Assembly (NCBI GenBank): GCA_946965045.2
Contig: OX337231.1
Coordinates: 3,906,001-3,970,000 of the forward strand
Reading direction: 5' to 3'
DNA length: 64,000 bases
Source of the DNA: Epithemia pelagica
Taxonomy: Eukaryota > Protista > Bacillariophyta
Positions 1-24,506 of the stretch are shown one piece after another. The notes under the pieces were generated by a model. It made no database searches, was not told the DNA's origin, and worked only from the letters and a program-made list of their open reading frames with translations. The stretch's first letter is position 1. Each line of letters opens with the position of its first letter. The position numbers and the translations under genes are program-made.

Positions 1-932
1 TTGTTGTTGTTGATAATCGGCAATGGCTTGGGTCAATTGTTCCATGGCCTGACAGGCTTCTTGGGCTTGTTCGACCAAACATTCTTGATCGAGGGGTGGG
101 AGTGTGGCGGCTTGAACATTGGAGGCGGCCACTTCTTCGACTGTCTCCCACGCCAAGGTGGCCTCGGTCGACTCGACACCATGATCGGCCGTGGCTTGTT
201 TGGCGGCCTGTAAGGCTTGCGACAATTGCGCTTGGACGGCGGGGGAATCGACGGCCGTGGCGGCTTGCACACCGAGTTTCAAGGCACTCAAGTCTTGCGA
301 CAAGGTTTGGAGTTGCGCCAAGGGGGTTTGATACTCTTGAATCAAGCGTTGCAATTCGGCCATTTTGGAATCGTATTCACGACAGGCTTCATTCACATCG
401 TCCACCAAACATTCTTGATCCAAGCCGCCCTTGGTCGCTTCACTATTATGAAGAATAATACCATACATACGAAACAACAAGAAGACGAATCCAAGAACAA
501 AAGGACAGACGACGACAACAAAGTGTAGATTATAGAATCGAAAACCACGCACACACCGAGAAAAAACCAGAAAGGATGGGAGCAAAAACAATTGTGAGTG
601 AGTTCGACAAGGAGATAGAGAAAGAAAGATCATCCATCCAGGTCCTCCTTCGCATGGCAGTCCCTGAACCGCATCCTTGGTCCAACGCGTACGTACCTAT
701 TGTCGGCTCCAAATTGCAATTCTTCCACCACTTCCCACGCCGCTTGAGCTTGTTGTGAAGTGGGACCAAATTCTTTCGAGGCAGCCATGGCAGCTTCCAT
801 GGCTGCTTGTTGCGAGTCGACCATGAACAGTCGACTATTGGACGTCGTCGTTGTTCCCACCATAAAGGCCGGCACGGTCTCCATCGTCGCCAACAAAAGG
901 GACGAAGCAAGGGTCCACTGGAAAATCTTCAT
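1..932 (-). CDS. Plastid-targeted tandem CP12-like protein (3' end runs off the window)
   Basis: ATG at 932; signal peptide ending VPA-FMV; intron 696-443 (GTACGT...AG) joins GADNS-EATK in frame; two AWExVEE motifs, each followed by a C-x8-C pair (ECLVDDVNEAC, ECLVEQAQEAC). Exon 2 was translated by hand because it is not in the ORF track. Confidence 0.8.
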
Positions 933-1444
933 GGCGGTAAATCGAACAAGAAAAAAGACAGTCAATATAGATTCTTGGAAAGAGCGCTTTCGGTTTATGG
1001 TTTTCTGTTTTCTCGACAACCAACATGAACAATCTCCTTGGCACAACCAAACCCACAAAGATTCGCATCTCCCCACTCCCCACATGCGTGTCTTTTTGGA
1101 GGCAAGTATTCCATCTGGTGTGCGTCACCGCTTTGCGTTCCACGATTGTTCTTTTCGTTCCTTCGTCATCTGGATGCGCTGCTTCGGGGCACTGCCCCCA
1201 GGGCGTATGGGTCGCGCGTACGAGCTACCCATCCCCCACAAAAACTACTCGTCCTACTCCTATAACAAAACCGAACGTCCGTGTCAATCCTCTCTACTCG
1301 TATAGTTAAAAATCATTTCGGAGTTTTAAAAAGCTCGTGGGTCGTGGGTCCACCCAAAAAAATCCTGTTCCAAAAAGTAAATTGTAAAATCGCTCCACAG
1401 GGGTAGTGCAAGTAGAATGGCTCTCTCTTGTAATAGAGACTCTT

Positions 1445-2545
1445 TCAAGCAGCGGCATCGTCCTCTTCGTCAAAAAGGGCATCCATCTCGTGCGGATCCA
1501 TGGGTGCCATTAGGTCCGACAGGAGAACAGAGGAGGAGGACGACGACGCCGTACCAGTAAACGTAGATTCCTCCGTGATTTGTCGCTGGAGCACCGGAGC
1601 ACTGGCCACTGTCCCCTCGTGTGTCGTAGTACTCGTCGTGCTGGGTCCTCCTCGTAGTAGCATGGGTCCTCCTCCGGTGGGTGTTGGTAGTGTCGTCGGG
1701 GTAGCAGCCGCAACAACACGTTCCATATTCCTCGTAGTCTTGTTCGGTCCCTGTCTCATCCTAGACAGAGTCGGTGGTGGTTGCTGTAACACCCCCAAGG
1801 GTGGCAAAGAAGACATAGTGGCCACACTTGGTGTAGATGTCGTGGCAATCACTCCGCGGTCTTGGTCCTCCTGCACGAGTGTCGTCGTCATCGTCTTTGA
1901 AGGTCTCTGCTGCATCCCCACCATCCAATGAATGCTCCCACCACTCTTCGTCGCCTCGTTGTCGTTTCGAGTGTCTTGTTTTGTTTCTGCTTCGTCCTGC
2001 GTCATGGTTCCTCCTCCACCTTGTGTGGTCGTGGCTTGTGGCCCAATGGTACTGGTGGTCGGACACGACGAAGAAGAAGGAGACCGATGAAGGTATCTCC
2101 ACATTTTGTAATTCTTGGTATAGTCATCTCGTTCGGCGGCGGCATGGGTTCGTAAAATCGTGCGCGACTCGGCATCCAAACGTTTCCATCGCTGGGCAAT
2201 CGTACGGGCCAAATCGGCAAAGCCAATCTTGCCATGTGTTTTGCGATGGACGCGGCGTCGGTTCTTGGCGATGGTCGTTGTTTTGAGCTTGTGTTGCCGG
2301 CAAATCTCCCGCGCTTGCTCATTGGTAATGGGAAGGTTGAGGACATCGGTGCCGTCGAGAATGCGCTGCCGCTCCATTTGAAAAAACATGTTGTACGCGC
2401 TCAAGGGAGGTTTCTGCTGTACGGGTTCTTCGTCGTCGTGTCGCTCGGCGGAGGCTACCGCCTGAGCGTTCGAGTCCTCTTGTGCCTCGGCGTCCATTCT
2501 CATGAGTTCCTCCATGGATGGTGGCATTGTGGTGCTTGGAACCAT
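1445..2545 (-). CDS. HMG-box protein (HMG1)
   Basis: PPLSAYNMFFQMERQRIL...HGKIGFADLARTIAQRWKRL; low-complexity C-terminal half. Confidence 0.9.
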   Translation of the reverse strand: MVPSTTMPPSMEELMRMDAEAQEDSNAQAVASAERHDDEEPVQQKPPLSAYNMFFQMERQRILDGTDVLNLPITNEQAREICRQHKLKTTTIAKNRRRVHRKTHGKIGFADLARTIAQRWKRLDAESRTILRTHAAAERDDYTKNYKMWRYLHRSPSSSSCPTTSTIGPQATTTQGGGGTMTQDEAETKQDTRNDNEATKSGGSIHWMVGMQQRPSKTMTTTLVQEDQDRGVIATTSTPSVATMSSLPPLGVLQQPPPTLSRMRQGPNKTTRNMERVVAAATPTTLPTPTGGGPMLLRGGPSTTSTTTHEGTVASAPVLQRQITEESTFTGTASSSSSSVLLSDLMAPMDPHEMDALFDEEDDAAA

Positions 2546-2842
2546 GGTTGACTATAATGGAATCTATGATTACCTAGATATCCTGAATATAGATGAGCGT
2601 GCCCACACAAACGTCGAACTAGGAGCTAGAATAAAGAATACGAATGGTTGGGCGTTGGATCGACATGGAGTTTCTCCTTGTCCGGGCGAAGAGACAACAA
2701 ACGAGAAGCACGGATTCATGTTTCATTGTCTTCAACAGCGGTTTGTTATGCGGGACGGCGACGACCAACTATGGTTGGAACTGGTGCCTACAATACTATC
2801 CCTCACCATTGACCAGTATGTGTGTGCTGAGTTCGCATTCGA

Positions 2843-3049
2843 AACTTCTAGAACTTTGAATTGACTGGTAGCTACTAGCTACAGAAGACAAAAGATTAAC
2901 AGATCGACACCGAACTTCTAGAACTTTGAATTGACTGGTAGCTACTAGCTACAGAAGACAAAAGATTAACAGATCGACACCGAACTTCTAGAACTTTGAA
3001 TTGACTGGTAGCTACTAGCTACAGAAGACAAAAGATTAACATATCGACA
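2843..3049. repeat. 70-bp tandem repeat, about 3 copies
   Basis: gaactttgaa recurs at 2851, 2921 and 2991; units are near-identical with no spacers. Confidence 0.95.
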
Positions 3050-4547
3050 TATATATTCATCTAAATTTTGATGTTTAAAAGCGTCCGGAGTCCGGACATG
3101 AATGAGCTATGAGGTATGAGGAATTGAGGAATAGTTATTGCGAACTGCGAACTACTCCTAACCATTAACTCTAAGATAGGGTTCGATGTTCGATGCTTTG
3201 GGTTTTCGATTTTCGACGTACGAGGTACGAGGTAGTACGAGGTACGAGTAGAGAGAAAAGGAAAGTGGAAAGTCTTACGTCCACAATGGGGGAACTGGAA
3301 GTCTCAATGGTCAATGGCATTTTGGCGTCCCCCACGATCACGAGAATCGAGAATCCATAATCCATAACCCATACCCATACACTCCATAATTCATAACCCA
3401 GAACCCATAACAATTGAACTGTGTTGTTCGTGCACAATAGCAATAGCTCTCGTCTCTCGACTCTCGAATGTCTTCTTCTAGAGCTAAGGTTATCAGCTAT
3501 CACCACCGTCAGGCCATCATGAGCAGTGCTAAGTGCTAAGTGCTCTATCTACAATTCGAGCTGCACACTGCACAATGATGTGGACGGCCTTTCATGATAT
3601 CCAACAACGGACAGCCTCTACACCATCTCTCTAGGACTACCTCATTTTCCCTCTCGTCACGGATCTACCACAAGATATGAGAGCAGGATGAAACATGCAT
3701 CATAAAACATGAATTATTATCATGATTCATGCTGTCTAGAAGAGGTTTAATGAAGTAATTGATGGACAATGACTTACAACCACCCTGATATTGCTCCTAG
3801 CTGGCTCCTAGTCATAAATCCGAGTACTCCTAGCTAGAACCATCTATCTCTAGCTAGAACCTACTCCTACCACCCAGAGCCTTGATGACTATTATTACTA
3901 GGTAGTTATTTATTTCATTATTTTTTGATCAACTGCTATCTGCTATCTGCTTTGATAAATGACGAAAGAATAATTTGAACTACTATGATTTATGAAAAGC
4001 TCTTTTCACTTATCAATTATCAACGATAACAGATAACAGACAATAATAATAATTATTATTTCGCCCTGAATTTTTCAAGCTGAAGATGCAGCTTTTAGCT
4101 TTTAGGGAATAATAGTGACTAATGACTACATCATACTACATACTAACCGTACATAGATTAACGATTTAGGATTTAGGATCTGTAGCTCCAGGGAGGCTAT
4201 AAGCTACCAGCTCTATGCTTTACACTTCTTTGTACTCTTTACTCTTTACGCTAAGCACTCAAAGCAGCTGAATTCTCGCTTCAACATCATCTCAATGACT
4301 ATAGATTAAGGAGTAGAGTTTGTACATGATTACACTGTGGGTTAACTTGTAAAAGTATGAATCGTAAAGTAGCCGATGTGTACGCCCGAAATGTTATGTT
4401 CTACGAGTATGTTCTTTGATCTCTGATCTCGCTTCTTGAACTCGTGATTGGTGATTGTCCACGTATTAATTTCTTATTTCTCCGTTCATTAATCAGAAAT
4501 GCAAACTGCGCGTCGTCCATTGGTGCTCGGAAAGGCAGCTTAGCACA

Positions 4548-5474
4548 ATGTCCACACTTTTTCTGAGTTGCAAAGACGAGAACCGAGGCTTTGTTCGAGA
4601 GATGCCTACGATCTACTCCATTCGTCCAACGCCACCATCTTTTGCAAATACCACCATGACACTACCTATCGAATCGGACTCGACGACACGGGCAAAAGCA
4701 CCGCTGAGTGCATACAACATGTTCTTTCAACTGGAACGCAAGCGCATTCTCAATGGTAAGGATCGTCTGCAAATGCCTATTACTCGACAAGAGGTCCAAG
4801 CGACTTGTCGTGAACATCGCACCAAGCAGAATCAGGTTAAACCCCGCCGTGTGCATAGAAGAACGCACGGTAAAATTGGATTTGCCGACCTGGCCCGGAC
4901 CATTGCGGCTCGATGGCGAGCATTGGACGACCACTCCCTCTTCCTCTTGAAGTCTCAGGCGGCCCTGGAAAAGAAAGAGTACATCAAGAACGAGCAGCTT
5001 CAAGACAATCGTGGTGTCCGTCGAAGAAAACAGGAGCATGGGCCACGCCAAGATTTATTGCAAAACATGAGGACGACGAACCAAGCCACTTCTTCTCTTT
5101 CTTGCTCCAAGCTTTCAGGAGAGGATGAGCCAGACCAGAGAAAGTCTCCGTCCATGATCGATCCTCTTATCCCCGAATACTCGATTGCGGTGCATGCAGA
5201 AGCACACCAGTCCATTCCAGTTCCAGAAAGTGAATCCTTAGCAACTATCCAGTTTGACGACCCACTGCTTGGTAAAGTACCACCAGTGGTATCCAAGACA
5301 GTTCCAGTTGCCGATCTCTCACGTTTCCATCAGAAACAAAAAGAGCATCCAGCTCGGGATCCATGGAAAGATGCCTTCTATTGGTTTGCTTCTCCAGCTA
5401 CATCTTTATCGTTGGAACTTCATGACCTCTCTGCCCCCCTGGATCCAGATGTCATGGATCATCTGTTCGAATGA
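4548..5474 (+). CDS. HMG-box protein (HMG2)
   Basis: APLSAYNMFFQLERKRIL...HGKIGFADLARTIAARWRAL; the true start may be a downstream Met. Confidence 0.9.
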   Translation: MSTLFLSCKDENRGFVREMPTIYSIRPTPPSFANTTMTLPIESDSTTRAKAPLSAYNMFFQLERKRILNGKDRLQMPITRQEVQATCREHRTKQNQVKPRRVHRRTHGKIGFADLARTIAARWRALDDHSLFLLKSQAALEKKEYIKNEQLQDNRGVRRRKQEHGPRQDLLQNMRTTNQATSSLSCSKLSGEDEPDQRKSPSMIDPLIPEYSIAVHAEAHQSIPVPESESLATIQFDDPLLGKVPPVVSKTVPVADLSRFHQKQKEHPARDPWKDAFYWFASPATSLSLELHDLSAPLDPDVMDHLFE

Positions 5475-6313: not shown

Positions 6314-8294
6314 TTAGTTGAACATGCGGAGTGCCAGTTCGAGGGGATGTCCCATTTTCCATCGATCGTGTGGTCCGGCCAAGGCTTGTTGAAAGTTGCG
6401 TCCTTGAGCAATAATGCCCGAGTTGTTAAAGGCCGCATGACTGGTATAATAATGTTGCTTGATATGATCCAATTTGATCACTTCTCGACCAATGACAGAA
6501 AAGGACGAATCCGCATCCAAGGTTGGAGTGGTATCGTCCCACAACAAACCGCCACCGACCGTGGGAGAGGAAGCACTGGCATTGGTGGCACCCTTGAAAT
6601 GGCCATTGCTACTTGTATTGTTGTGTTGTTGTTGAGGATCTTGTTCATGCCGAAACTGGTAAATATCTCGACAATACTGCATCAAGGTGGGTGCATCTCC
6701 CACCAACCGTGTATTGGCCTTGAACAAGACGGCATAAACTTCATCAATGCGCACCAGGGTCACAAACAAGCGGACATCGGCTTCGGTAATGCTATTGCCC
6801 ATCAAGTATCTCGAGGTTTGCAACATGGACACGATTTTATCAAAGGCCTGGGTGAATTGTTCCATGGCAATATTGTATTAGGCCTGGGTTTCGGCCAAAC
6901 CGCATTGGTAAGGAGTCATGTTGAAATTGGTGTAGAGCCAGTCATTTAGTTCGTCCATCTCTTGTTGTTTGTCCGAGGGATACAAGTCCAGGTTGGGATA
7001 TTTGCAAAAGGCATTGAATTCCGAATTGAACATGCGAACGATATCGGACGATTCGTTATTGACAATGGTCTTGGTCTCCTTGTCCCACAAGACGGGGACG
7101 GTAAAGGGACCAGACGCAGCCTGTTTGCTGCTTTTGGATGCGGCATGATCGTAAATATCCCTCAAGGAAAAGGCTCCAAATTCGGGATCTGGTTCACAGC
7201 CTTCCAAAACAGTCGGAAAGGGCCCACCCTTGCCTTGTGGATTGGTATAATACGTGACATCCTCATCCTCATCGTCATTCGTAGTAGTACCGTTGGTGTG
7301 AGTGTGAGCATGGCTCTTGGATGTGGCAAAGACCCATCCGGCATGATCGTCCTGGGGTTTGGTGTTGCGAAAGGTGGGCAACAAGAGTGTCATGCTAATG
7401 ACGTGTTCGAGGCCCTTGAGTTTGCGGACCATGAGCGTGCGGGTCGCCCATGGACATCCAGCCGCCGCATACAAATGATAGCGACCCGATGCGGCCGGAA
7501 ATTCGGCCGAGGGATCATCTATAGGTAGGCAGTTTGTAGGTAAAAGGAGTCGTAGAGAGGGCAGTCGTATAGATGGACCAACAATTATTGTGGAGCATGA
7601 ATGGCAGTCCCAACCAACACTATTCCAACCAACGAATCGTAACAGGAGCAAGAAACCAAAACAGTACCAATCGAATAGAACCAGTAGAGAACACAAACGA
7701 ATCACACAAAGAGCCATTACCCAGATCACGCACACCAAACCACGCAAAGACACATGTTGCCAGTGAGAAACACACACAAACACAAGAGAACAAAAGAGAA
7801 GGACACTGGCACAACAGACCAACCAAACGATGGTCGTTTTCCTTGCGGCATTCCTGCCAAAGAACGCTGCCTGCCTGCCACACAACGGTACGTACTGGCT
7901 CGGACAAAGGATCGCCATTGGGAGGGTTTGGGAAAAACTTTTTGGTGCCTGGTTGTGATTTGGATTGTGCTTGTTTTCCTCCTCCTCGGCCACTCTTGGT
8001 GGAGGAGGACGAAATGAGGGAGGAGGTTCGAATGACGGCCGGTCCACTGGTGTTCATGTCTTGACTGTCCAAGGACTTGGTTTGTTGTGGCACTTGCTGT
8101 TGTTGTTGCTGTTTTTTGCGTGTTTTGGGAGGCGGTGATTTGGCTCGTGCGGCATTCTTGTTCTTGTTGTTGGTAGTCGCCGCATCTTTGGCATTGGAAC
8201 TCTCCAATACTTGCAGGGCATCGTCCTCCGTGGTTGTTTTGCCATTCTTGCCTTGTTGTTGTTGTAGGAGTGGTCGATTCTTTTTGCGAAACAT
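6314..8294 (-). pseudogene. Glutathionyl-hydroquinone reductase / GST omega-like (YqjG/ECM4 family) with one in-frame TAA
   Basis: RYHLYAAAGCPWATRTL, FTVPVLWDKETKTIVNNESSDIVRM, ITEADVRLFVTLVRIDEVY. ORFs 6878-8047 and 6314-6865 are in the same frame, split by TAA at 6880-6878. Probable first exon from 8294, with an intron ending at the AG at 7520-7519. Confidence 0.85.
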
Positions 8295-8547
8295 GATGAT
8301 GATTCGTTGGGTTTCCAACCGAAAATACAGAGAGAAATTGTAGAGTATCCGAGATGCAGCAGCACCGTCACTCAACGACGACAACGATCCTCAGGAGTCT
8401 GCACAGGTGAGATCTTCCTACGTCCGTGACTCTCGTCTTGTTGTCCTGTTGTTGTGGTTGTTGTTGATGTATAGCAGAGACGCACCACACCGATAAAGCT
8501 AGAGAGAGAGACGTTTTGTTGTCGAGAGAGTTGTGTGTTCTTTATGG

Positions 8548-8579
<32 letters not shown>

Positions 8580-9158
8580 TTTCATTGTAGAAAGCAAGAG
8601 TTTGCATCTTGCATCTCCGAAAAATCTGTCAATAGATGACCGATCCGCGACCTCAGTGATCGGAGGACGGACTGTGAGCGGCGACTGACGGATGCTCTCT
8701 GCCGGCTGTCGCGTTCGTTCCAAGTTCGCTCCGTTGGCACAAAGATACCTTTCGCTCCACTTTCTTCTCGCGCCATCTGTCACGGCAAGATATTTTGGTT
8801 TGTTTCGTCTAAAACTCTATTCAAGAAAAGCATCACTCTAGTGGTACCGAGCGAAGCGTATCATGTCTGAAATCTATTTCATTGGAAGGCGGAATCTCAT
8901 TCCATGTCATGTCAACGTCATTGGTGAAAATGCGTTCGTTTTTCTTGGAACCATGTTTGTGGTGTATCATGGATTGCCGTGAATTGGAAGCAGCAGACGC
9001 AGTGTCATAATATACCCAACGCTTGACTCTCTTCTCTCTTGAACTCGAGCAGTCACAACGCTTGACTACACACAAAGCACAAAGACCTTTGAGAGGCAAC
9101 CACACAAACTCTCTCTTTCTCCTTCTCTCTACGACACGACCTTGTCCTCCTCCTCATC

Positions 9159-16969: not shown

Positions 16970-17255
16970 CTTCTGTGGCTGCCGACGCTCCTGAAGCGAT
17001 GGTATCGCTTCAAGAGTACTCCACGCAGATAGACATTAGTCCCTCAGGACTGAGCTATGTATGTAGTAGAAGTAGGAGTAGCCATTAGCCATCTCTACAG
17101 TAGTTCTTTACTGCATACTCCCAAGTCCTTCGACTTGACCTTTTCCTCTTTGAAGATATAGAAAGCTGAAAATGCCTCAAAATTCCAGAGGGTTGGAAGA
17201 ACGATGTTGCATCGACTGAATCTATTTATAGGTAACACAGGAACATCCAAAACAG
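16970..17255 (+). repeat. Diverged, internally deleted relic of the Fic locus (upstream region fused to 3' end)
   Basis: About 16970-17090 aligns by eye with 19322-19415 (gacat.agtccct/ggactg/tgtat/agtaga.gtagccat). About 17123-17255 aligns with 20540-20685 (caagtcctt.gacttg...ggttggaagaa.gat.ttgcatcgac.gaatc) and translates KSFDLTFSSLKI* versus KSFDLYFSSLRIES*. Confidence 0.75.
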
Positions 17256-17370: not shown

Positions 17371-19285
17371 TTACACTGCCGCCGAGGACATGAGATCCTC
17401 AATCATCTTCACTTTGGATACTGCATAGTACTGCGGAGCCATCCCGGCGAAGCCTTGGATGACGGTCTTCATTTCTTTTCCTTTGGTGGTCAAGACAGGC
17501 ATGTACTGAATTTTTCGGCAACTCTCCATCGGAGAAAAGAATATGGTCACAACATCTGGATATAGTGCAACCCCACTGTGCCTATCCTGAAGGCGTTTCC
17601 TGGTAGCATTGAGCGCTCCGTTGAGATGAACCCCGTACACTGTATGTGAGGGTTTATCTTTGGTAGTATCGCTGCCGGACACTGTCATTTGCAACCCGAC
17701 TAGAACAATGCTGTTTGACAGTTTGGTTTCCATGGCGTTCCTTTCTGGCACACTAAGGCTTGAAGCGTCCGCACTGAAAATGCCGATGCAGGACAGAACA
17801 GAAAGGAGTCGTGGGTCGGAAAGTTTGAAGTAATAGGGTGAAAGTATGTTTGAAGTAGATTGTCGGTTCCAATCAAGGCTGCGTTTTCAAGCGACGTTCC
17901 TGGAAAGTACACAGAAGATGATCGAGAGAAGTCAAGCGACAATTCGGACTTTACAAGAATTCCTTTCATGCTATTCTGACTCGGGCCATGGCAGCCAAGG
18001 CACTTTGCCTGTCTCAACAATGGACCACCACCAGAGACCTGTTTGTGCACCTCGTTCTCGTACAGAACCCCGTAGGCATCTTGATGGCCCATCGTTATGC
18101 TTAAAGCAGCCACAACAAGCCCGAGAGCTTTACAGTTTTTGGCTTTGACTTCTTTCATGAGCAGCTGCCCCAAATAAGGAGATGCAAAATGGATGCGGTA
18201 CCCAGCCGCGAGTGGTGATTTGTGGAAGAGCAACTCCTTCGTTTTTGTGGCCTCTTCTTGTCCCATGGCTTGGTATTCGGCTATCTTTGCAATGGCTTGC
18301 ATGGTTTCGTCTGGGATCGGTGCGTCAAGAATGTCACCTTTTGCCGTTCCGGCCATCTTCAGAGTCTCCGCAAACTCCAAAACGAAACGAGCGGAGCCAC
18401 CGTATCGACGATAGCCTTCCATGACATGGTCTAGATCAAGCGTACCTGAGGATTTCGACCATAATAGACCAAGTTTGGCAGCATACATAAACTCTTCGCC
18501 GCACCATAAGTCGGCGCTTCGTTTGTTTCGTACTGGAGGGATACCCAACTTTCGAACCATTCCCAGAAATGTCTCTTGCCCGGAGGAGACGGTATAGACT
18601 TCACGGCCTCCGGAACCTACTAGCTGAAGACTGTAAAGAGCACCAGGATCGCGTATAATGATGGCGCATCCGGAGCTTTTCCACTGGACCAATTTCTCAT
18701 CGAAGCGAGAAGCCCCTTGTGTTGCATGTCCATACCAAAAGTCTTGGCCCATCGGTTGTGTGCCAATCTCTAATAGCAAGTTTGAATCAAGTTCTCTTGC
18801 GTCTTGGTCTTTGACAAGCTGGTTGGGATTTGTCTTGGTGAATGCCCAGATCTTATCTTCATAGTAGAGCACAACAAGTTCACCAAGATGAAAGTGGCGA
18901 CGAGCTAAGTAGAGGGCAAACATCGTTTTCCCAACACCAGCAGTGCCCGTTATGATCGATACTTGCTGAATGCCAACCTCAAAGTCTTGGAACCTTTTAT
19001 CCAGAAACGTTGCGAGTGTCTCGTAGCAGGGTCTCTCGATCAAATATGGCGATTCGTTCTCCTTTTGCCATGCCGGTCCACCTACCTAGGTAGATCGATG
19101 AAACTCCGAAAGGGACAGTTCTCGAAAGGCACGACCATCGCGTCCGAGAAAAGGGCATTGTGGAGAAATAATGGAAGGAAGCGTTCGTGCTTTTGCTGCG
19201 TTGGTGCCGCTACCAGGGGATGAACCTCGTCTACTAAGATCGGATGGGCGATTCTTCTTTTCCGTTTGCTGCTGCTCTCTGTCAT
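17371..19285 (-). pseudogene. Crinkler/RHS (CR)-type P-loop NTPase + PD-(D/E)xK-like nuclease, frame-disrupted
   Basis: IERPCY; Walker A ITGTAGVGKT; Walker B-like AIIIRD; YGGSARFVL; YFHPITSNFPTHDSF...LQMTVS...H. A 1-nt frameshift at the T-run near 17777 links ORFs 17700-19043 and 17371-17751. There is a second break near 19082-19093. Confidence 0.7.
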
Positions 19286-19536
19286 TTTGCTGCTGGCTGT
19301 ATTATCCTCCCAAGTACCGGTAGTCTTCTGCTGGTCTTGTCAATCCGTCCTGAAAATGTGTCAGAACGAGAGGACGGACATGAGTCCCTGGACTGTGTAT
19401 AGTAGATGTAGCCATCCTATTTCCTTCAGGACCTACGTGCGACTACGTGCGATTGAATAATACATACGACACATAACAACTTTTGGAGCTCACTCACATT
19501 TTTGTGTATCTCCTCCCGTTCAGCCGCAGCAAGACC

Positions 19537-20584
19537 ATGGACTACTATTATCTCTTTCCTCTGTTACTCATTCTCTTCTGCATTCTTGTGCTGTTATGGT
19601 GGTTTTCTGCCTTGGAGTATGTCGGGGGTGTGGCTGGAGTCGGATCGTTACTGGCTGTGTTCTTTGGCGTGCGACTGGACTTGTGGCGTCGCCAGCGAGA
19701 GAGGCTTCAAAAGGAGCAGCAAGAGACGGTGGAATTTGTACAACAGGAAATCCACAAGGTATACCAAGGAGGAAGGATAATGGACCCATCGGGAAAGGTC
19801 TTTGCAAAGTACTGTCACTTATTCGAGGTTACGGCACAACCCATGGACGTGGATGCCTTGACGGAAAAACTAGGAAAATTGCAACGCGGACCACGTACCA
19901 TCGGGTTGCGACGCCCCGGCTTGCTCCAGAAACTCAAGATTGACATGACGTACCATTCCAACGCCATTGAGGGAAATCCAATAACCTACAATGAGACGAA
20001 GATTATCCTGTCGGGATTTGTGGGACCCCGACGCCGGAGTCTTCGGCACGTGCATGACATTGTGGGACACGGCACGGCGTGGGAGCAAGTGCAACAATGG
20101 GCCGCCGTCGGCCCAACAACTGTCTCCATGGATCAAGTGAAACAGGTGCACGAACTGGTCTTGTTTGGTTCGCCCGACGGCGGAGTGTTTCGAAAAGACG
20201 GAGAGATTGCGGTACTCACAAGGACCAAAGTGCTGTTGGCCATGCCGGAGGAGACCGAAGGCGCTGGTACAGCGGCTCCTGGACTGGCTGTCGAGCCATT
20301 CCGATGCCCATCCGTTGGTCTTGGCCGTGACCTTCCATTGCATCTTTGCTCGGATCCATCCATTTCGGGACGGCAATGGGAGGACGGCCCGACTTGTGTC
20401 CAACTGGATTTTGATGCAGCACGGATATCCTCCCATTGTGGTTCCAGTGGGAGCCAGAAAGCAGTGCATGGAGTCGCTTTTGCAATGGGACCAGGGCGAT
20501 CCTGGCCCGTTTTCTCGGCTCATGGCCCATCTCTTGCACAAGTCCTTTGACTTGTACTTTTCCTCGTTGAGGATCGAAAGCTGA
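19537..20584 (+). pseudogene. Membrane-anchored Fic-domain AMPylase (FICD/HYPE-like), single-base frameshift
   Basis: N-terminal hydrophobic segment; TYHSNAIEGN inhibitory helix; HPFRDGNGRTAR active motif in the second frame. Deleting one G at 20260-20261 gives PEETEALVQRLLDWL. Confidence 0.88.
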
Positions 20585-20741
20585 CAATGATGCCTCAGAA
20601 TTCCACACACGGTTGGAAGAAGGATTTTGCATCGACCGAATCCAAGTATAGATTGATAGATGTAGTACAGGAACACGCAACACAAGACAGTCGTGAAAAT
20701 AATCCATACAATCGGCACATTGTTTGCCAACTTGGTAGGTT

Positions 20742-21571
20742 AGCTTTGTCCAGAGACTTTTGGGCCGCCTCGACATTGGCCACTTGGAGCTCTTCCAGGT
20801 TCATTTCGAACGGCTGTTTCGGTTCCGTGTTCGAGTTTGTACTTGGGTGACACAAGTTAGTGTGAGAAATCTGAGTCGTCCAAGAACGGGTCGGCGAGAA
20901 TGCCACCGTCGCCTTTGCAGAAAGAAGCACGGCAAACAGCGAGCTTCCACCCAACCGGCAACGCCATTTGCTTGTCATCTTGTTGAAGAGGGGTCCCTTC
21001 GTGTCCCCCCTTGAACAATTTGACAGACAAATGGTGTTGCCTGTTGGGACGCTTGCTGTTTGCCGTCCTTCTATCTGCTAATGCAACTTTCATCAAGGAA
21101 CAAGCTTCCATGTTCGAATGCTTACAACTCACAAAAATCCACGGTTCGCAAGCTCACAACTCACAATATAGCACTAGTATTTGCAGTCGCAGCAACAGTA
21201 CTCGACAGTAAAACGTAGCAATAGTGTTTGACTTCTTAAACAGAACATGGAAGAGCTCCAAGTGGCGAATGTCGAGGTAGCACAAAAGTCGCTGGACAAA
21301 GCTGCAGCTTTGTCTCAGCTTTGTCCAGAGACTTTTGGGCCGCCTCGACATTGGCCACTTGGAGCTCTTCCAGGTTCATTTCGAACGGCTGTTTCGGTTC
21401 CGTGTTCGAGTTTGTACTTGAGAGACACAAGTTTGTGTGAGAAATCTGGGTAGGACGGGTCGGCGGCGAGAATGCCACCGTCGCCTTTGCCGAAAGAAGC
21501 ACGACAAACAGCGAGCTTCCACCCAACAGGCAACACCATTTGCTTGTCATCTTGTTGAAGAGGGGACACAA
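20742..21571. repeat. Three alternating-orientation copies of a short plastid-leader/coiled-coil gene fragment
   Basis: Minus-strand copies at about 20742-20994 and 21316-21571 (MTSKW...ATVAFSP...LEELQVANVEAAQKSLDKA); degenerate plus-strand copy at about 21006-21304. Confidence 0.85.
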
Positions 21572-22269: not shown

Positions 22270-24506
22270 CTACAACCAGGACCAACACGACGACAGGGCC
22301 CATGCCAACGACAGAAAAATCATGGATGGAACGACGACGACACGTCGTGGTGGTGCACTGGAACGCTGATTGGGTGCGGGTGTGGAACGACACCAGGCAT
22401 AGTCTCCCACACAGGGAGAATGACAGGCCGGACCGGTCCATTCCAAATCGGGACATAAACATTGACCTTCGAAACAGACACTGTTGCGATTGGGGACGGC
22501 ACTGAGTTGCGACGCGAGCTCGTCCAATTCATATCCCGTCAATGCTGCGTCCTTGTCTAGTCCCCCATTGGCACTGTTGCTGTGGAAATTGGCCAAGATT
22601 TGTTCCGTGGCGGTTATCTTGCCACAATCGGCATCGGTGAGACACGAGGCACCACCATGTTGGACTGTTTGCAAGGGTTCCTTGTTGATCCAGGAATTAA
22701 AGGTAAAGGCTTGCCAATTTTCGTCAATCAAGTCTTTGGTGGGATATCCGGGTGGATCGCATCCCAAGGTATGCGTCGGATCCTGCAAATCCTGATAGAC
22801 ACGGACAAAGTCAATCTTGTATTCGGCGGGTCGTTCGGGAGAAATGTCTTGACAAAAATCGGCAAACCACGCCGTCGTATCGGGACAGCGCAAACAATCG
22901 GGATTGGAACAATCCAAACAGGTCAATTCGCCACTGGGCGAACACATGCCCGTGGCGGCCATGCAGGCATTGTTGGGATCGCAGCCATTCCAGCCCCATC
23001 GGGGTGACACGTCCGTATTCAAAATCAAGTACATGGCTTCAAAGGGAATTTGCGGAATGGCATCGGCTGCGCCTGGTTTTTGATGCAACATGTCGGCCGT
23101 GACTTGATAAATCAATTCGTCACCAAAATACCATTTGACATAACCATCCTCCTTGCCACTTTGCCATTCCGTGCGAAGGACTGTTTGTTCGGTATAAAAG
23201 GATTCATCGTGATGCCAATTGCAGGACAAGCCGTCTTGCCACACTTCGGGTTCCAAGTTGATGGGCTGTATAGCAGCAACCACAAGGTTCCACAAAGAAG
23301 AAGAGTGGCGTGAGAAAATCAGCCCATCATACATGTGTATACACAAACACAACCATTCTGAATGTCACGACCGTCATGACTGGATACCGTTCTTACCTGC
23401 CCATACCAGTAATTGTTGATCATTCGAGGGGGTCGTTCGTTGTCTTCTTGTTGTGCCGACAGGGTTGTGGCATTGGTGTTGAGATCCAAGCCTTCAAAGT
23501 TGTAGGCCGGTCCTCCCATGGGATACAAGTCGGGATACCATTGACCAGGCTGGGGGAAATTGGGTGTCGTGGGACGCAATTGTGGATGGACCCCGGGCGC
23601 CACTTGCAAGGACGACGATATGAGAGGTCGTCGAATGGTATATTCCTGGACGGTTCCATCGGCAAATTCGACACTGTCATAGACCAAGGAAAAGCCTCCG
23701 GGTTGCGCTTCAATGATGTCAATTTCCGGACCGCCCCGACCGGCACCCTTGGGGTCGTCGCACTTGTTGTACCGCTGGGCCTGTTGGACCTCTTGGGCTT
23801 CGGTCGACACACCGCATTCGTCGTAACTGTACGGCCATACACCGTTGGAACTTTCCAAATAATTGGGACGGACCAAATTGCCCAGCATCTGTCGTATGCA
23901 ACACAAAACGACGGTGTGAGTATGGAGACTGGTTGACACATCCTAAGGGACCCGGTCAACAACAACAACCACAACAAGATTAATACGTACCCAAAAGGCG
24001 GGCCACAATCCACCTTGAAGAGCCGCTCCAGGCAGTTGAAACGAGATTTCAATCACACCCGAAGTGAAACAAAACTTGTTCCATGTGGTGAGCATACCGG
24101 ATTGATAAAAGCGTGAGAATTCATATTCTTGCCCGTTGTTGGGATCGTATTCCTTCCATTGCGCATCCGTGCGACTGGTCTGAATGACGAGGTTGCCATT
24201 TTCCGTCAAGACGTGGCTGCTGTTGTAGTATTGCAAGCCGGCATTGGTGACACCGGGACGATCTTCGGCCGTCCAACGAGTATCGGCGCCATCGTGAAAG
24301 GATCGACCGGGATCCAAAAACTCGTCGCTAAACACCAAGGACAAGGTACGACCGCCCATACCGGTAGTGGTGCGGGCATTGGTCGGTGTGGAGGGATCCA
24401 CCCACTCGTCATGATTCGAGCTGGAAACCAGAGAAGATTGTCCAAGTGCCAAGACACCCAGAACGGAAAGACAAAGACGATGGGGAAAGGAGGGAATGGA
24501 ATTCAT
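22270..24506 (-). CDS. GH16 Kre6/Skn1-like beta-1,6-glucan transglycosylase
   Basis: Signal peptide, LVFSDEF, YQSGMLTTWNKFCFTSG, GLWPAFW|MLGNL, catalytic PEIDIIE, MYLILN; introns 23990-23889 and 23396-23266; hydrophobic C-terminal tail. Confidence 0.9.

Follow-up and report, generated by a model that had tools for sequence, protein, structure and literature searches.

Canonical Crinkler effectors carry an N-terminal ubiquitin-like header with an LxLFLAK motif (Pfam PF20147), which serves delivery. FICD/HYPE is the metazoan Fic enzyme of the endoplasmic reticulum membrane that AMPylates and de-AMPylates BiP. Both the Crinkler/RHS-type (CR) and the Fic families are tied to conflict systems elsewhere. 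Here, we analyzed a locus of the diatom Epithemia pelagica in which a CR gene and a Fic gene lie head to head, within a window of 64,000 nucleotides (nt) (contig OX337231.1, positions 3,906,001 to 3,970,000; G000:C4:3906001-3970000) of a 60.5-Mb genome in 23 contigs. An earlier reading of the window, referred to below as the original prediction, proposed that the two genes form a co-transcribed functional module. Our results point instead to unrelated genes that are probably chance neighbors, in this diatom lineage only and in a structurally unstable region.

According to the summary of Zhang et al. 2016 given in PMC5289972, the prevalent CR architecture consists of a nucleoside triphosphatase (NTPase), a helix-turn-helix, and a restriction endonuclease (REase) domain. 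CRN homologues in free-living eukaryotes have already been reported (PMC5289972, PMC12957317), and the closest named relatives of the genes in our window are found in the pennate diatoms Seminavis robusta and Nitzschia inconspicua.

The CR gene runs from 19285 to 17371 on the minus strand and the Fic gene from 19537 to 20584 on the plus strand. The pair is thus divergent, so that "co-transcribed" cannot be taken literally. Recurrence of the pair was assessed by tblastn at nine other CR loci, namely C5, C16, C7, and C9 of the same genome (with 10 kb on either side) and the foreign loci L015, L016 (N. inconspicua), L035, L036, and L037. Six other Fic loci were covered in the same manner: C2, C10, and C3 of the same genome, L033 (Seminavis), L034, and Fic copy B of L032, a second assembly (ENA ERZ21939226). 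Fic was found within the available flanks of none of the nine CR loci, and CR near none of the six Fic loci; copy B of L032 has SKN1 as its upstream neighbor. The adjacency is therefore unique to this locus among the loci reached, an outcome that the original prediction itself had named as speaking against a module. A module also requires both genes to be intact, and no allele seen has the CR gene in frame. The Fic gene, for its part, is conserved alone in other diatoms and duplicated without CR in the other haplotype. Because the CR copy is frame-shifted and decaying, Fic is an ordinary conserved gene, and the pair occurs nowhere else within reach, the two are most likely neighbors by chance.

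The window copy of the CR gene consists of three pieces in three frames, which are colinear end to end with full-length homologues (P0001 to P0012; 627 to 653 amino acids [aa]). Its features, together with the spacer toward Fic, are as follows.

19286..19536, no strand: spacer of 251 bp between the minus-strand ATG (19285) and the plus-strand ATG (19537)
19091..19285, minus strand: N-terminal piece of 65 aa, with the basic cluster KRKRR (19253-19267) and an FLHNALFS motif, located by tblastn of P0001 and P0002
19080..19090, minus strand: break 1, with 8 extra nt relative to the L-GGPAW of homologues, by homologue and allele comparison
17778..19085, minus strand: body of 436 aa, with the P-loop NTPase, a helical middle, and the beginning of the C-terminal domain; 61% identical to P0001 (438 aa aligned)
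18924-18947, minus strand: Walker A motif GTAGVGKT, in the body
18648-18665, minus strand: Walker B-like motif AIIIRD, in the body
17808-17819, minus strand: PTHD, at the start of the C-terminal domain
17772..17780, minus strand: break 2, where the frame shifts at an A4 tract (plus strand) at approximately 17776, by homologue and run comparison
17371..17790, minus strand: C-terminal piece with the REase-like domain and the stop codon (17371-17373), by homologue comparison
17677-17694, minus strand: LQMTVS (LQxTVS, invariant in the family), in the C-terminal piece
17644-17655, minus strand: KPSH ((K/R)PxH, invariant in the family), in the C-terminal piece
17530-17547, minus strand: TxFxxP, invariant in the family, in the C-terminal piece

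The KRKRR cluster and FLHNALFS recur at the N termini of CR homologues. Break 1 falls within 19078-19091, inside a perfect 12-nt palindrome, CTACCTAGGTAG, made by a doubled ACCT (plus strand) that is single in other alleles, and it may reflect replication slippage or the footprint of a transposon excision. In L032 and in every contig from four public runs, this site holds 4 extra nt and is still out of frame. Break 2 is heterozygous: runs X1 and X3 contain the window form alongside one that has an additional A and is in frame here. Further frame-shifting indels segregate at 17571 (-1), within the conserved C-terminal domain, and at 18480 (+2) and 18849 (-4), the last two being sample specific. 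In X1 and X3, the form in frame at 17776 and the -1 indel at 17571 are carried by contigs of comparable partial depth and so most likely belong to the same haplotype, with no single contig spanning the two. No ATG-started frame in the window covers the P-loop. Introns were considered as the cause of break 1 (and of the matching place in C5) and rejected, as the candidate intervals of 20 to 32 nt fail to keep the frame or remove conserved residues. One shared lesion followed by haplotype-specific ones is the pattern of a decaying pseudogene, and we infer that the window CR copy is most likely one.

The family to which this copy belongs is small and mostly restricted to diatoms, with full-length members of approximately 630 to 650 aa. 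When 1.84 billion representatives were searched exhaustively with a profile, no more than 184 relatives reached an E value of ≤1e-3, mostly metagenome fragments; a protein of Batrachochytrium salamandrivorans is among the distant full-length ones. A word-search using a profile with distant members (alignment A6) returned nothing beyond the close diatom relatives. In the Atlas, the language-model feature scores of the CR protein are 0.98 (226 of 256 shared) to a cluster named "Crinkler (CRN) family protein," 0.93 to the cluster of kinetoplastid RHS proteins, and 0.90 to a cluster of oomycete Crinkler-header (PF20147) proteins, which are its nearest clusters. The order of P-loop NTPase, helical region, and REase-like C-terminal domain is likewise that of CR proteins.

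P-loop residues are invariant or nearly so across the family (GTAGVGKT and hhhhRD; G119, G122, G124, K125, and D220 in A6). Pfam nSTAND3 is hit by the Walker A region of 9 among 12 family members, with a best E value of 6.8e-6 and 19.7 bits, under the cutoff of 27.2, and AAA is matched as well, weakly and below threshold. Beyond these two, no family was assigned to the CR protein by Pfam, NCBI-style family naming, or PADLOC. Structure models were built from intact natural homologues rather than from the joined pieces of the window. The full-length model of homologue P0002 has a mean predicted local distance difference test (pLDDT) score of 62, and its top Foldseek rows are RPP1, Apaf-1, NLRP7, and ORC2, all weak (E value, ~2e-3). 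The Walker A region and these rows recall STAND NTPases (nSTAND3; NLR, Apaf-1, and ORC/Cdc6-like AAA+ proteins), from which the family differs in that every Pfam match lies under the cutoff and the Foldseek values come from a model of modest pLDDT.

The C-terminal domain was modeled from 32 sequences with a pLDDT of 91. Against the PDB, its Foldseek E values exceed 0.2 and the best VIA Z score is 3.7, and the weak rows include roughly a dozen proteins of the REase fold; neither this domain nor the full CR model gave a significant PDB fold match. In the ESM Atlas, the domain reaches template modeling (TM) scores of 0.47 to 0.57 to clusters bearing a Crinkler header or RHSP and of 0.37 to 0.43 to Rpn/Transposase_31, Mrr (Mrr_cat), and LlaJI nucleases. 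Its invariant residues read PTxD ... LQxTVS ... (K/R)PxH (alignments A3 and A6) and do not form a canonical PD-(D/E)xK motif, since Thr occupies the position of the expected Lys. The displaced basic residue of (K/R)PxH could replace that Lys.

Taken together, the minus-strand gene encodes a header-less Crinkler/RHS-type NTPase with an REase-like C-terminal domain, a fold assignment that is moderately supported, and its nuclease activity is putative. In this respect, the CR-type NTPase with a nuclease-like core given in the original prediction is supported by the Atlas features and the shape of the C-terminal domain. Compared to canonical Crinklers, the diatom family lacks the ubiquitin-like header, LxLFLAK, and a secretion signal. 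In Pfam scans, PF20147 was matched by neither the window pieces nor 22 family members, and PF07999 gave no sequence-profile match to the CR proteins. Instead of a header, approximately 100 aa with a basic, nuclear localization signal-like cluster precede the NTPase. The family also differs from canonical CR proteins in its D...QxT...(K/R)PxH signature, and the window copy in its broken frame.

Intact paralogues occur in the same genome at C16 (631 aa) and C7 (691 aa), and the C9 paralogue is a fragment. Copia-type (RVT_2) retroelements lie a few kilobases from CR genes in L015, from another diatom (666-4703), and in L017, the C5 locus in another assembly (1-3859), in transposon-rich surroundings.

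The plus-strand gene is a membrane-anchored class II Fic gene nearest to FICD and is conserved as a stand-alone gene in diatoms. Its features in the window are listed below.

19537..20259, plus strand: first piece, with two hydrophobic segments, a basic stretch, and SNAIEG; open reading frame and FICD alignment
19549-19608 and 19621-19677, plus strand: hydrophobic segments (residues 5-24 and 29-47), with Kyte-Doolittle 19-residue means of up to 2.65 and 1.8, respectively
19957-19974, plus strand: inhibitory-helix motif SNAIEG, in the first piece
20260..20260, plus strand: frame break, GAAGGCG in the window versus GAAGCG in both L032 Fic copies and all contigs of the four runs
20261..20584, plus strand: second piece, with the catalytic loop and stop codon; Pfam Fic E value of 2.4e-15 and FICD chains at 8e-17
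20357-20392, plus strand: catalytic loop HPFRDGNGRTAR, read as a motif and matching HPFx(D/E)GN(G/K)R

Apart from the window, the Fic frame is intact in both copies of L032 and in all contigs of the four runs. As these contigs represent a different allele, approximately 2 to 3% divergent, the extra G near 20260 may stem from a consensus error or mark a private null allele. An intron at this break was also considered and rejected: a 49-nt GT..AG interval (20212-20260) would restore the frame but delete FICD-aligned residues, which the intact allele P0014 retains. This allele encodes 348 aa, is 97% identical, and matches Pfam Fic at an E value of 1e-20. The full-length Fic query aligns with human FICD at an E value of 4e-26, from residue 129 and through the inhibitory helix and HPFRDGNGRTAR to the C terminus, with SNAIEGN (19957-19977) facing TVAIEGN; the C-terminal piece matches the FICD homolog chain 5jj6 at 8e-17. 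The membrane Fic of the original prediction, with its inhibitory helix and intact motif, is thereby recovered. Indeed, every CR and Fic motif that the prediction had named was found at its place. Its proposal to work with repaired proteins implied broken frames, and the genes are indeed spread over several frames, three for CR and two for Fic, although the breaks were not detailed there.

Orthologues in other diatoms are 54 to 70% identical and include an S. robusta protein annotated as "FICD homolog." With the window Fic pieces placed end to end and the break base omitted, dN/dS comes to ~0.25 across the window copy and both copies of L032, which indicates that Fic is under constraint. The core also matches prokaryotic defense-associated Fic models in PADLOC (SoFic and PDC-S04), and this reflects the Fic domain alone. 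With FICD, the diatom protein shares the (S/T)xxxE(G/N) and HPFxDGNGRxxR motifs and an N-terminal membrane anchor, and its best matches among solved structures are FICD chains. By analogy with FICD, it would AMPylate or de-AMPylate a cellular protein. However, the protein lacks the two tetratricopeptide repeats (TPR) of FICD, because Fic is the only Pfam domain and no TPR family was matched in Pfam scans of P0014, P0015, and P0017; approximately 85 residues lead from the anchor to the inhibitory helix. A further difference from FICD is that two hydrophobic segments are followed by a strongly basic stretch. By the positive-inside rule, this arrangement suggests that the Fic domain faces the cytosol rather than a lumen. 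The second segment is kept in P0014, P0015, and P0017, and the first in P0014 and P0015 but not in the Seminavis protein P0017. The nearest Fic paralogue, C2 (G000:C2:1835900-1837400; L022/L029), has 46% identity in the C-terminal half, with a further tandem copy, limited to that half, behind it.

The surroundings of the pair bear traces of several duplications, one of which, represented by the following relic, may have involved both genes.

17120..17255, plus strand: relic comprising the final Fic codons with the stop codon and ~100 bp of 3' flank, ~83% identical to 20537-20690

The relic lies directly downstream of the CR stop codon, approximately 3,420 bp from its counterpart. In L032, a tandem duplication of ~6.8 kb starts 13 nt before the Fic ATG, reaches into SKN1/KRE6, and contains Fic, local repeats, and part of SKN1/KRE6. 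The two Fic copies of L032 lie at 1160-2206 and 8001-9047, and the duplication junction joins window position 23843 to 19524. Copy B consequently follows SKN1 and lacks both CR and the shared spacer. Runs X3 and X4 have loose ends at 19524 that, by their position, are of the kind that the duplication junction would leave. The 251-bp spacer is 96.9% identical to that of L032, and divergence between the window and L032 rises from ~0.2% across CR (18378-19285) to ~3.5% (dS, ~0.08) across Fic (19537-20584). This jump, together with the approximately equal distances among the three Fic copies, suggests recombination or gene conversion among them. The window further holds repeat units of ~570 to 575 bp at 20742-21571, which are 96 to 97% identical, have internal inverted repeats, and carry short signal-peptide-like open reading frames (MTSKW...SLFAVLLSAKATVAFSP); several more copies are present in L032.

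The flanking genes encode an NF-Y-type histone-fold protein, ORMDL, SKN1/KRE6, and a pyridine-nucleotide disulfide oxidoreductase, all of them ordinary cellular genes. The layout described in the original prediction, with divergent starts approximately 250 bp apart on an island among housekeeping genes, is therefore borne out, and with it the observation on which the prediction was built. The functional module that it drew from this layout is not supported.

Some points weigh against reading the pair as a decayed CR gene beside an unrelated Fic gene. Few diatom genomes were sampled, several foreign contigs have short flanks, and at L034, L035, and L037 the flank measures <400 nt on one side. 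The Fic relic fits an old tandem duplication of a CR-Fic unit followed by a deletion, and if it arose in this way, the adjacency is not very recent. Finally, the allele with 4 extra nt (L032) has an ATG-started frame, MPFSRTRW..., that opens 24 codons before GGPAW and enters the NTPase body, so this allele could yield a truncated CR product.

From that frame, the CR copy might still be expressed as an N-terminally truncated NTPase-nuclease, independent of Fic, which we consider unlikely. The C5 paralogue (G000:C5:1173431-1175283; L017 7690-9572) would fit such a use: its sole obvious lesion is a frame change within 5 codons of the position of break 1, where the N-terminal region meets the NTPase body, yet it keeps an open body of 558 codons. 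The like placement of the two lesions may be a coincidence or a preferred route of inactivation for CR genes. However, truncation would remove 65 residues that are conserved family-wide, including the basic cluster. Moreover, the haplotype in frame at 17776 has the -1 indel at 17571, and the window haplotype is broken at 17776.

Slightly less likely still is a former cassette: CR and Fic would originally have functioned together as a linked pair and been copied as one unit, and the pair would have been decaying since the CR partner was lost. The position and spacing of the relic, directly past the CR 3' end, are those of a CR-Fic tandem repeat, and the CR body, stop-free over 436 codons, implies a fairly recent inactivation. 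However, a tandem duplication copies neighbors whether they interact or not, so the relic is uninformative on function; the pair occurs in no second lineage among the loci checked, and the other duplications in the region ignore CR. A more far-reaching version, which we regard as very improbable, would make the pair a lineage-specific nuclear NTPase-nuclease checked by a membrane Fic, duplicated as a unit (relic, 17120-17255) and now decaying, and more broadly would see in the header-less CR proteins of diatoms an endogenous immune or selfish system built on a STAND-like NTPase-nuclease. Least probable of all is a working two-gene conflict module with a shared bidirectional promoter, in which Fic would regulate or neutralize the CR NTPase-nuclease or both would act as defense or cell-death effectors: the closely spaced divergent starts, the ties of both families to conflict systems, and the PADLOC hits of the Fic core speak for it, but those hits concern the Fic domain alone and PADLOC has no match for the CR proteins, every allele seen has a broken CR frame, the partner is absent at all other CR and Fic loci checked, Fic orthologues are maintained in the absence of CR, and copy B of L032 has neither the spacer nor CR.

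Our reading of the two genes as probable chance neighbors may be summarized as follows. The CR gene belongs to a set of four or five paralogues from a small header-less Crinkler/RHS-type family, found mainly in diatoms, with a short basic N terminus, a STAND-like P-loop NTPase, a helical region, and an REase-like C-terminal domain. This copy would have become a pseudogene when a frameshift, now shared, parted the conserved N terminus from the body, after which the haplotypes would have gained frame-shifting indels of their own. Fic is a conserved, membrane-anchored class II enzyme of diatoms, with an FICD-like core and an autoinhibitory glutamate helix but no TPR repeats. The locus around them is structurally unstable, and the Fic copy of the window has a one-base break not seen elsewhere.

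For the locus itself, these results mean little beyond annotation, and a tempting conflict module is taken off the list as unsupported. Two records result: a small header-less family of Crinkler/RHS-type NTPases with an REase-like domain in diatoms, whose intact paralogues are open to study, and a TPR-less, membrane-anchored FICD-like Fic kept in pennate diatoms. In addition, the locus illustrates structural polymorphism between haplotypes and the stepwise decay of a pseudogene.

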